Source: Hypanus sabinus
Taxonomy: Eukaryota
Assembly: GCF_030144855.1 (NCBI RefSeq)
Contig: NC_082738.1
Coordinates: 64,976,001 to 65,040,000, forward strand
Length of the DNA: 64,000 nt
Reading direction: 5' to 3'
Below the pieces are notes generated by a model that was not told the DNA's origin, searched no databases, and was given only the letters and a program-made list of their open reading frames with translations. Positions 18,484-64,000 of this stretch are shown piece by piece; position 1 is the first letter of the stretch, and each line of letters begins with the position of its first letter. A program made the translations under genes and the position numbers.

Positions 18484-19022
18484 TTGCATTCACCTGCTGC
18501 ACCAACAACTCAACCTGGAGGTTAACCTTTAGGGTATCCTGCACAAGGACTTCCAAGACCCTTGGCATCTCTGCATTTTGAATTCTCTCCTCATCTAAAT
18601 AATAGTCTGCCCACTTATTTCTTCCACAAAGTGCATGACCATACACTTTCCAACATTGTACTTCATTTGCCACTTCTTTGCCCATTCCCCTAAACTATCT
18701 AAGTCTCTCTGCAGGCTCTCGGTTTCCTCAACACTACCCGCTCCTCCACCTATCTTTGTATCATTGGCAAATCTAGCCACAAATCCATTAATCCCATAGT
18801 CCAAATCATTGACATAGGACACAGATCTTGTTGAATAGTAGAGCAGGCTCGATGCTCCAGGTGGCCTACTCTTGCTCCTTTTCTTGTCTTTTATTATGTT
18901 CTTTCATATTTATTATGTTCTTTCATATTTAGACCTGAAAATTGTAAGCATTACACTATCATAGTATGTCAGCACCCAAGCCAAGTATGGCCAATGTGGG
19001 GAAACTTGTACTGAGTCTAGGA

Positions 19023-20073
19023 CAGGCATGGGCAATCTACGGCCCGGGGGCCATATGCGGCCTGTTAAGCTTTTCAATCCGGCCCACAAAACTTGATGAA
19101 ATTATATTAATAAACCTTGTTAACGTTTTTTCCCCGCAATTCTGGCGTTTTCCCAATAGATGACGCACTGTATATACATTGACCTTTGTTGAGGTGCAGC
19201 GTATTACTCCACATTTGCGCTTTACTCTTTGTTCGGCTCGACCTATTTATGTGAACAGGCGTTCAGCGTCATGAACATCAACAAAGCCAGCCACAGATCC
19301 AAGTTAACTGACCAACACCTCAGATCCATCCTGAGAATCGCCACAACAAAACTAAATTCAGACTTTGATGCGCTGGCTAAAAAGGGAGACCAACAACACT
19401 GTTCCCACTGAAATTAAAAATAAGTTTCTTCGTTGTGTTATGTAAAAAATGCATTTGAAAATATTATTTTCAATAAGCCTTACATGTTACATGTCATTTC
19501 TGTTAAGTGATGGACATGAGTAGTGCGCAGGTGCACGTACGTTCTCAAAATAAAAAATGTGCTCCAGATCAAATAACGCGCTCTGCATACTGGCGCGCTG
19601 TCACTGTTCTGTCATTGTGCTGGTCGTTGTTGAGTTTTGGCACAGGGGACAATTGAATAAGAAGGAGCAGGACAAGTAGACCTGCATCTCCTACTGTTTT
19701 TGAAATAAAGACAGTCAGGAGGAGAGTGATGATGATAATATCTTGAAGGATAACAGAATTTTCAGTGCTTTAAAATAAAAACTGTTACTATTAAAAAAAG
19801 CTGTATTTTATTCATTTAATTTTCAGTGTTTTAAAAGTCATTTCAATAAATAGCTAAATACCATGGGACTTCAAAGACAGATATTTTGTTGTAATGCATT
19901 TGTTCATTTTCAATTGAAATTAAAGCACATGTTTTCTACATATCCCATGATAATTTATTTTCTCTTATGAGGTGTATTACCAAAACATTCCGTTCATCTG
20001 CTCCAGGTTCGGCCCCCCTGTCAAATTTTAGAACCCTTTTTGGCCAACAAGTCAAAAAGTTTGCCCACCCCTG
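19023..20073 (+). mobile_element. Internally deleted hAT (Charlie/GTF2IRD2-type) DNA transposon
   Basis: TIRs caggcatgggcaa / ttgcccacccctg; 8-bp TSD gtctagga (19015-22) vs gtcaagga (20074-81); C-terminal dimerisation motif FGSTYLCEQAFSVM; empty site at 45276-45283. Confidence 0.9.
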
Positions 20074-20297
20074 GTCAAGGATTTTGTGGTTGATTGTGTC
20101 ATGTACTAACTTGCCTGACCCAGAACAGAAATCTATGCACTTGTGGTTCAATAGCTGCAGTTGTTTTGAGACTATAAACCGAGCCAACATTTGTGGGGTG
20201 AAAGTAAGATTGGTCAACAGGCGCAGGCAAGAAGAACAATGTTTGTTGCAATAGAGTATTAATTTTACACTTGTATTTTCATGTGGTTGTATTACAG

Positions 20298-62300: not shown

Positions 62301-62465
62301 AATGCGAGGTCATCCACTTTGGAAGGAAAAATGGAAGATCAGATTATTATTTAAATGGTAAAAGATTGCAGCATGCTGCTGTGCAGAGGGACTTGGGAGT
62401 GCTTGTGCATGAATTGCAAAAGGTTGGTTTGCAGGTGCAGCAGACAATCAAGAAGGCAAATGGAA

Positions 62466-64000
62466 GGTATTACCCAAAATTATTTCAGATGATCAAACTG
62501 GTTTTATTAAAAATCGTTATTCTTTTTTTAACATGAGGAGATTGTTGAATATTGTTTATACTCCCTCACATGACACTTCAGAATGCGTGATTTCATTAGA
62601 TGCGGAGAAAGCATTTGATAGAGTTGAATGGCCTTACTTATTTAATGTGTTGGAGAAGTTTAATTTTAGTCCGATATTTATATCATGGATTAAATTGATT
62701 TATCATACTCCATTAGGCTCAGTGTTTACCAATAATCAAAGATCTCCCTTTTTTCGCTTTTTTCGGGGCACTAGACAAGGATGTCCTCTTAGTCCATTAC
62801 TATTTAACATTGCCTTAGAACCTTTGGCAATTGCCATCAGACAATCACAGGATATTTTGGGTATTAATCGTGGGACAGATATTCATAAGTTATCTTTGTA
62901 TGCAGATGATTTATTACTATTCATTTCTAACCCGGAGAAATCCATTCCAGCAGTTTTATCATTATTGGCTCAATTTAGTGAGTTTTCTGGGTATAAGTTA
63001 AATCTTAATAAAAGTGAATTGTTTCCTTTGAATAAACGGGTCCCAATTTATGGAAATTTACCTTTTAAATTAGTTAATGACTCTTTTACTTATTTAGGGA
63101 TCAAAATCACAAAAAACCATAAAGATTTATTTAGATTTAATTTTTTACCCTTAATTGATCAGATTAAAGATTTGTTTACTGAGTGGTCACCTTTATCTTT
63201 CTATCCCTAATAGGTAGGATTAATGCTATTAAGGTGGTTATTTTACCTAAGTTTTTATATATTTTTCAAGCGATACCAATTTTTATCCCGAAATCTTTTT
63301 TTACTAATGTTGACTCTAAAATTTCTTCATATATATGGCAGAATAAAAATCCCAGGTTAGATAAAACATATTTACAGAAGACAAAAAAGGAAGGCGGGTT
63401 AGCATTACCTAATTTCAGATTTTACTATTGGGCAGTTAATATTAGATATTTGTTATGTTGGTTGAAAGATGGGGGTGGATCTTTTGGCCCTTGTTGGGTG
63501 AGTTTAGAAACTAAATCGGTATCAGCTTATGCTCTGGGTTCTATTTTAGGGACTTCTCTCCCTTTTGCTCTTTCTAAATTGTCGAAACGAATTGACAACC
63601 CGATAGTTAAACATACTTTGCGTATATGGTTTCAATTTCGGAGATTTTTTGGGTTGACTCAATTCGTTTTAAATAGTCCTATTGTATCTAATTGTTTTTT
63701 TCACCCTTCCATTATAGATCAAGCTTATTTGGCTTGGAAAACTAAGGGATTAATAAGATTTTCTGATTTATTTTTAGACAATTGTTTCATGTCTTTTGAG
63801 CAATTATCCAACAAATATAACTTGCCTAGATTTCATTTTTTTAGATATTTACAGATTAGACATTTTTTAAGTTCTGTACTCTCTACGTTTCCGAATTTTG
63901 TGCCTTCAGATATTTTGGAGAGTTTATTTGAATTAGACCCTTCTCAAACGGGGCTTATTTCAAAACTTTATAATATAATTATGAAGATACGTTCAGAGCC
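62466..64000 (+). mobile_element. Duplicate of the L1 element, running off the window
   Basis: Matches 41985-43519 at offset +20481. Confidence 0.9.

Follow-up and report, generated by a model that had tools for sequence, protein, structure and literature searches.

How many genes for the ribosomal protein uL14 (RPL23) does the stingray Hypanus sabinus carry at its RPL23 locus, and by which route did they come to stand in tandem? The question is raised by a stretch of 64,000 nucleotides (assembly GCF_030144855.1, contig NC_082738.1, positions 64,976,001 to 65,040,000 of the forward strand), in the following called the window and numbered from its first letter. An earlier note on this DNA had described a tandem array of RPL23, SNORA21 and a cyclophilin retrocopy with RPL23 present about three times. 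A tandem duplication at DNA level is indeed found in the assembly, but the count has to be revised. The assembly contains two complete RPL23 genes and one dead fragment (in the following R1), and the number of functional RPL23 genes is two, not three. The window itself comprises one complete RPL23, one 3' fragment and one 5' part. Taken as a whole, we consider it fairly probable that we are dealing with a real tandem array that has passed through a very recent unequal crossing-over.

Repeat units and RPL23 genes

Self-BLAST and MAFFT alignments of the window revealed a direct repeat, in which positions 20071-37209 match 45272-62428 over 17,157 bp, and a second matching block, in which 41942-43519 correspond to 62423-64000. 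The offsets between the two units are 25,201 bp and 20,481 bp. The size gap of 4,738 bp is made up by a BEL/Pao element, which is present in the first unit (unit A) and absent from the second (unit B). These offsets bear out the near-identical unit of about 20.5-25.2 kb given by the earlier note. Over their whole length units A and B differ by 11 single-nucleotide polymorphisms (SNPs) in 18.5 kb (0.06%). The 64-kb window contains not a single N, and both units therefore lie in one contig.

The complete gene, called the middle gene here, has the following parts:

30440-46500, + strand: RPL23/uL14 middle gene, complete (spliced coding sequence; NCBI gene call)
30460-30472, + strand: exon 1
33632-33715, + strand: exon 2
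33972-34100, + strand: exon 3
45500-45613, + strand: exon 4
46360-46442, + strand: exon 5

Its exons were placed by motif search and direct reading. The spliced coding sequence (CDS) of 423 nt encodes 140 amino acids (aa), all introns are of the GT-AG type and intron 3 measures 11.4 kb. A terminal oligopyrimidine (TOP)-like start, CTCTCTCCC, lies ahead of exon 1, and an AATAAA is found at 46474. Exons 2-5 are identical to the protein P0026 (uL14 isoform X1 [Hypanus sabinus]), which was retrieved with exon 4 as seed and has a precomputed Pfam match to Ribosomal_L14 (PF00238). Furthermore, the NCBI annotation of GCA_030144855.1 has a 140-aa Ribosomal_L14 gene at the middle position. The complete RPL23 that had been noted in the window is thereby confirmed.

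The second gene enters the window with its 5' part:

55659-64000, + strand: second RPL23 gene, 5' part
55679-55691, + strand: exon 1
58851-58934, + strand: exon 2
59191-59319, + strand: exon 3

Its exons 1-3 (55679-59319) are a letter-for-letter copy of those of the middle gene and the promoters are identical, too, as expected from the second promoter and exons 1-3 of the earlier description. Intron 3 of this gene lacks the BEL/Pao element, and the gene extends past the window end. Its NCBI range corresponds to window positions 55679-66923. The middle gene, at 15,983 bp, is longer than these 11,245 bp by exactly 4,738 bp (the BEL/Pao element plus its target-site duplication, TSD), indicating a third exon 4-5 segment about 2.9 kb past the window at unchanged distance. 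Right of the window, the NCBI gene table lists an SPMAP1-like gene 7.7 kb after the second RPL23, and the NCBI gene calls of GCA_030144855.1 include no third cyclophilin gene there.

Both RPL23 copies also contain an alternative first coding exon:

30684-30750, + strand: alternative first coding exon in intron 1
55903-55969, + strand: alternative first coding exon in intron 1, second copy

P0026 consists of this alternative exon followed by the canonical exons 2-5. The RefSeq isoform X1 has 157 aa, with a 22-aa leader in place of MSKRG, and is annotated for the second gene only, although the alternative exon is identical in both copies. The 140-aa stingray protein is not among the members of the P0026 protein cluster. 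A weak match to the HDV-like ribozyme drz-agam-1 was seen in intron 1 at 32660-32735 (+ strand), with a second one about 25,219 bp further right. The core aligns well; the score of 21.4 bits (E 0.97) compares with a gathering score of 37, and the stretch may be the 5' end of a retrotransposon.

SNORA21 and a related candidate were located within the RPL23 introns and in R1:

45774-45910, + strand: SNORA21 in intron 4 of the complete gene (RF00412, 79.0 bits, E 3.9e-16, full length)
20558-20694, + strand: SNORA21 in remnant R1 (RF00412, 79 bits, E 5.9e-15; identical to 45774-45910)
35678-35812, + strand: weak SNORA21-like H/ACA candidate in intron 3 (RF00412, 39.2 bits, E 2.6e-5, full length)
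60897-61031, + strand: weak SNORA21-like candidate, second copy

An Rfam scan of the window at gathering threshold returned no SNORA21 match. The strong copy lies 1 bit under the curated gathering score (80 bits) and was found by permissive scans. In the RF00412 alignment, 45774-45910 shows two hairpins, the H box AAAGGA and the ACA box ACAUUU; it thus has the H/ACA architecture with the ACA 3 nt from the 3' end and resides in an RPL23 intron. In human, too, RPL23 is the host gene of SNORA21 (PMC5552212). Judged by score, boxes and host gene, and not by the formal threshold, we regard the strong copy as the SNORA21 orthologue. The claim that the unit includes SNORA21 therefore stands, with a near-threshold full-length match in intron 4 plus a weak copy in intron 3. 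For the latter candidate, folding gave two hairpins, and its ACA box stands 3 nt before the end; it may correspond to a second SNORA21 paralogue. Counting the one expected beyond the window, the assembly would hold three SNORA21 copies, of which that in the remnant is without a host promoter.

The remnant R1 and the switch of identity

R1 and the elements that set the repeats apart are listed below. The mobile elements are the BEL/Pao element, bounded by long terminal repeats (LTRs), and a miniature inverted-repeat transposable element (MITE) with terminal inverted repeats (TIRs).

18824-21300 (right limit approximate), + strand: R1, 5'-truncated remnant of an upstream RPL23 (homology to 45104-46520)
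20298-20397, + strand: pseudo exon 4, with a 14-bp deletion leading to a frameshift and C>T at 20317
21144-21226, + strand: R1 exon 5, identical to 46360-46442
45104-45533, + strand: 5' part of the middle exon 4-5 segment, functional-type, about 98% identical to R1
19023-20073: hAT-like MITE of 1,051 bp, in R1 only (TIRs CAGGCATGGGCAA / TTGCCCACCCCTG)
37209-41941, - strand: non-autonomous BEL/Pao LTR element, in unit A only (Pfam DUF1759, DUF5641)

R1 contains, in this order, the 3' tail of a long interspersed nuclear element (LINE), the end of intron 3, pseudo exon 4, intron 4 with SNORA21, and exon 5, with a poly(A) signal (AATAAA) at 21258. Its homology to the middle copy begins at 18824. 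This point falls in the 3' tail of a LINE, the one occupying the last part of intron 3. A search for intron 3 or exons 1-3 left of R1 (1-18823) gave matches at the level of transposable elements (TEs) only, and the promoter is likewise absent from this region. There is no NCBI gene call at 18824-21300. R1 is thus no complete RPL23 gene, as exons 1-3 and the promoter are absent and exon 4 is frameshifted. Of the 'pseudo exons 4-5' of the earlier note, exon 4 is in fact dead due to the 14-bp deletion, while exon 5 itself is identical to that of the intact gene. An origin of R1 as a retrocopy by LINE 3'-transduction was considered and rejected, since no poly(A) tail follows the RPL23 poly(A) site at 21258-21300.

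The comparison of R1 with the middle copy falls into two parts. Positions 18824-20317 show about 98% identity with three indels, namely a 20-bp tandem duplication, the MITE and the 14-bp deletion; five SNPs follow the MITE and about three lie in 18824-19022. From 20318 to 37208, only 8 SNPs separate the sequence from the second unit in 16.9 kb, besides three 1-bp differences, all of them in homopolymers of at least 10 bases. The last R1-specific difference is located at 20317/45533. It is followed by 2.1 kb without any difference, up to the next one at 22400/47616. This places the switch of identity between 20317 and 22400 in R1, or 45533 and 47616 in the middle copy, from exon 4 onward. Direct adjacent copies, a hybrid repeat and an identity switch at the exchange point are the type of signature left by non-allelic homologous recombination (NAHR).

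The few SNPs between units A and B are not evenly spread. Six of the 11 are found within 480 bp of the BEL/Pao site (P about 1e-5), where the divergence amounts to 0.74%. This is close to the 0.59% between the two LTRs of the element, whereas the remaining A/B sequence differs by 0.03%. The BEL/Pao insertion is much older than the rest of the divergence between the units.

The LTRs of this element (37209-37882, 674 bp, and 41265-41941, 677 bp) are 4 SNPs and a 3-bp indel apart and have TGT...ACA ends. The element is flanked by a perfect 5-bp TSD (GTTGG), and unit B has the precise empty site at 62424-62428. DUF5641 was matched with an E value of 8e-25 and DUF1759 with 23.9 bits, below the cut-off of 25.4. 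The LTR ends, the 5-bp TSD and the Pao-type domains assign the element to BEL/Pao. With Pfam, its two long open reading frames (ORFs) gave no match to a protease, reverse transcriptase (RT) or integrase core, and the internal region comprises only 3.4 kb; the element does not qualify as autonomous.

The MITE is bordered by an 8-bp TSD (19015-19022 / 20074-20081, 7 of 8 positions matching), and its empty site in the middle copy is at 45276-45283. In the contigs of four related organisms the MITE sequence reaches word depths in the thousands, so that this MITE family is abundant and probably recently active.

The left 18.8 kb of the window have the appearance of nested transposons, and no host gene was seen there. 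LINE endonuclease and RT ORFs are located at 15792-18281 and a LINE RT fragment at 12431-13378. The stretch 12449-13702 is repeated at 17217-18480 with 97% identity.

Layout in related stingrays and origin of the second unit

Each unit carries a cyclophilin gene on the opposite strand:

25946-26789, - strand: cyclophilin A-like processed retrocopy of unit A (Pfam PF00160 Pro_isomerase, 2e-42)
26224-26718, - strand: CDS of the unit A retrocopy, 164 aa
51164-52008, - strand: cyclophilin retrocopy of unit B (NCBI gene call)
51443-51937, - strand: CDS of the unit B retrocopy, identical to that of unit A

Several features mark it as a processed retrocopy: the 164-aa ORF is intronless and accompanied by an AATAAA and an A10 tail, and TSDs of 16 bp, perfect direct repeats, stand on either side (25930-25945 and 26790-26805 in unit A). 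The 164-aa product is recorded at exactly two places of GCA_030144855.1. A 208-aa form starting from the first ATG is not on record; the annotated form is the 164-aa one. The protein is about equally close to human cyclophilin D and cyclophilin A. The 'PPIA retrocopy' of the earlier note is therefore a true processed retrocopy, present twice, but the label PPIA holds only if read as 'cyclophilin A-like'. A cyclophilin gene of the same type in Mobula birostris spans 8.9 kb, indicating that a multi-exon parent exists. More cyclophilin A-like copies that lack introns and have open frames (P0128, P0129, P0131, P0134 and P0136) were seen on other chromosomes of H. sabinus and Hemitrygon akajei, where unrelated genes (tensin-like, otoancorin/stereocilin-like) house them in their introns. 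RefSeq annotates such cyclophilin retrocopies as genes, and batoids appear to have a small family of them.

One such copy connects the locus with a second genus. In the gene table of Hemitrygon akajei (GCA_048418815.1), P0135 lies between two 140-aa Ribosomal_L14 genes. P0135 is the orthologous and closest Hemitrygon copy to the cyclophilin of our window (90% identity) and shares its unusual Cys19, but it is decaying (4-aa deletion, truncated end). It is situated 5.0 kb after one RPL23 stop and 2.6 kb before the next start; the corresponding distances in H. sabinus are 5.0 and 3.7 kb. The order RPL23 - cyclophilin (- strand) - RPL23 thus recurs in two genera and two assembly projects, which argues that the tandem duplication is old and that the tandem arrangement as such is probably real. 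This corrects part of the 'young expansion' proposed before. The two-gene layout predates the split of Hypanus and Hemitrygon, and only the event that gave rise to the 99.9% identical units is recent.

Logan contigs of four related organisms (word share 0.31 or less) served as a further comparison. Positions 20078 to about 21300 are covered by a single contig in each of the four. In three of them this contig also covers 18824-19018 and skips the MITE (joint 19018 -> 20078). In all four, the contig has the functional-type letters at 20254, 20260 and 20317, contains the 14 bp of exon 4 and differs by 1.1-1.8% from the window. The absence of the MITE and the undeleted exon 4 in the relatives indicate that R1 was damaged only in the lineage of H. 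sabinus. In all four relatives, the contig with exon 4, SNORA21 and exon 5 (20078-21300) has about twice the word depth of the low-copy spacer contigs (22086-24075). This 2:1 ratio is no valid measure of copy number and was left out of the copy count; it would agree with two identical gene ends per spacer that have been collapsed into one.

From these observations the following course of events may be proposed. Ancestral dasyatids would have had two tandem RPL23 genes and, between them, a spacer with the cyclophilin retrocopy. The upstream gene would have lost its promoter and exons 1-3 in the H. sabinus lineage, leaving R1, which would then have gained the MITE, the 20-bp duplication and the 14-bp frameshift. 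Very recently, unequal crossing-over by NAHR would have paired R1 with R2, its presumed counterpart in the intact gene (exon 4-SNORA21-exon 5), the sequence of which would lie outside the window. Thereby, the 20.5-kb piece between R1 and R2, comprising the spacer, the retrocopy, the promoter, exons 1-3 and most of intron 3, would have been duplicated. The product would have the order X - R1 - unit A - H - unit B - R2 - SPMAP1-like, in which H, the hybrid middle exon 4-5 segment, would be functional-type (R2-type) to 45533 and R1-type beyond. Units A and B may come from two haplotypes, one with the old BEL/Pao element and one without, by an exchange between homologues; such an origin would explain the clustering of the A/B SNPs around the BEL/Pao site. 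The outcome would be three SNORA21, two retrocopies and two complete genes that run in the same direction and have identical promoters. The gene table, with its succession of a 140-aa gene, a cyclophilin, a second gene and the SPMAP1-like gene, is in line with this reconstruction. The same applies for the origin of the sequence in a curated assembly from HiFi reads of about 15 kb, built with hifiasm and Hi-C phasing.

Several points weigh against such a recent crossing-over, and they lead to the most serious of the alternatives. The two-unit state in H. sabinus is known from the assembled sequence alone, the hybrid nature of H is derived from the comparison of R1 with H only, and the region right of the window is known as a gene table only. 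The gene table of Hemitrygon shows two genes and one spacer, not an extra unit, and the 2:1 depth of the relatives says nothing about H. sabinus itself. Moreover, the differences between A and B look like those between alleles (0.06% SNPs, a TE present or absent, indels in homopolymers), and a haplotype artefact predicts the same pattern. Alternatively it might be, therefore, that the extra unit was created during assembly. The true haplotype would then read X - R1 - one unit - R2 - SPMAP1-like, with one intact RPL23 and a dead remnant, and the haplotypes with and without the BEL/Pao element would have been threaded in series by a jump across the part in which R1 and R2 do not differ. The 11 SNPs in 18.5 kb, the old TE precisely absent from one unit with an island of SNPs around it, and the location of all three 1-bp indels in long homopolymers would be accounted for, and the 'hybrid' H is just the product expected from an R2/R1 jump. 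Near-identical neighbours with allele-like SNPs and TE presence or absence are also what is seen in haplotypic false duplications. These usually consist, however, of separate contigs joined by gaps, whereas no gap or contig end separates the stingray copies, which are joined via the hybrid segment in one gap-free stretch of a HiFi-based, Hi-C phased and curated assembly. As no third cyclophilin follows the third exon 5, the stretch shared by R1 and R2 past the switch should be under about 5 kb. This is shorter than the reads of about 15 kb and would make mis-threading unlikely. Furthermore, two genes at the locus in another genus show that a two-gene state is nothing exotic. We consider an assembly artefact unlikely, although it deserves to be taken seriously.

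Less is to be said for a further reading, which goes beyond a single recent event. In whiptail stingrays, two active identical RPL23 genes plus extra SNORA21 might form an array evolving in concert, in which, in H. sabinus, one gene died and a fresh unequal crossing-over restored the two-gene state. We regard this as a doubtful proposition.

The weakest of the explanations assumes an old three-copy array that was kept alike by gene conversion without any recent duplication, conversion failing only beside large heterologies (the BEL/Pao element; the MITE and the deletion in R1). The divergence beside the BEL/Pao element resembles that between its LTRs, as if conversion had stopped at the arrival of the element, the identity switch comes right after the MITE and the 14-bp deletion of R1, the tandem layout is old (Hemitrygon), and, judged by depth only, identical exon 4-5 segments seem to be present twice in the relatives. 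This view is nevertheless quite improbable, since tracts of 5-10 kb without any difference would be unusually long and, with only one exact cyclophilin copy in the Hemitrygon array and depths of 2:1 instead of 3:2 in the relatives, the third segment and the second spacer look specific to H. sabinus.

Parallels and meaning of the array

The recent crossing-over that we favour would have its closest parallel in the recurrent copy-number variants (CNVs) produced by NAHR in human. In both cases near-identical units follow one another in the same orientation between older repeats (about 98% identical in the stingray, presuming R2), and a hybrid middle repeat shows a sharp switch without new junction sequence. 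Unlike in the human CNVs, an older tandem pair of the very same gene supplies the flanking repeats of the stingray with its 3' ends, so that each event would add or remove a whole ribosomal protein (RP) gene.

The gene itself resembles human RPL23 in belonging to the uL14 family with a Ribosomal_L14 domain, in its 140 aa, five coding exons and TOP-type start, in its intronic RF00412 H/ACA snoRNA and in the adjoining SPMAP1-like gene. Fused SPMAP1-like/L14 gene models are found in other vertebrates, too (P0075, P0087). Human SNORA21 lies between exon 2 and exon 3 (PMC5552212). In contrast, the strong stingray SNORA21 lies between coding exons 4 and 5 and the weak one between 3 and 4; the exon numberings of human and stingray RPL23 were not reconciled for this comparison.

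Human has one intron-containing RPL23 copy. To our knowledge, intron-containing cytosolic RP genes of vertebrates are rarely kept as DNA-level tandem duplicates.

Retroposition or whole-genome duplication is the usual source of extra RP genes (PMC4219774, PMC10313321). Rps27/Rps27l (PMC10313321) and the retro-duplicated RP genes of mammals (PMC4219774) share with the stingray array the presence of more than one expressed-looking copy of an RP gene. Those paralogues, however, are old copies from whole-genome duplication or retroposition with diverged regulation, whereas the stingray copies are DNA-level, tandem and intron-containing, and identical in promoter and protein. The mechanism, tandem duplication and turnover of copies by unequal crossing-over, is an ordinary one; the gene is less so. 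No paper on tandem RPL23 genes of stingrays was found in the literature searches made, and the genes are already in RefSeq.

For users of the assembly, the 45-kb stretch is one in which the copy number warrants a check before gene families are counted. Any effect of the array on uL14 dosage, on the snoRNA level or on p53/MDM2 signalling would be conjectural. If the array does evolve in concert, selection may act on the dosage of uL14 or SNORA21, and this in a vertebrate without whole-genome duplication. In any event, an RPL23 array common to two stingray genera would offer a natural case for studying how a change in the dosage of a ribosomal protein and a snoRNA may be tolerated or buffered.

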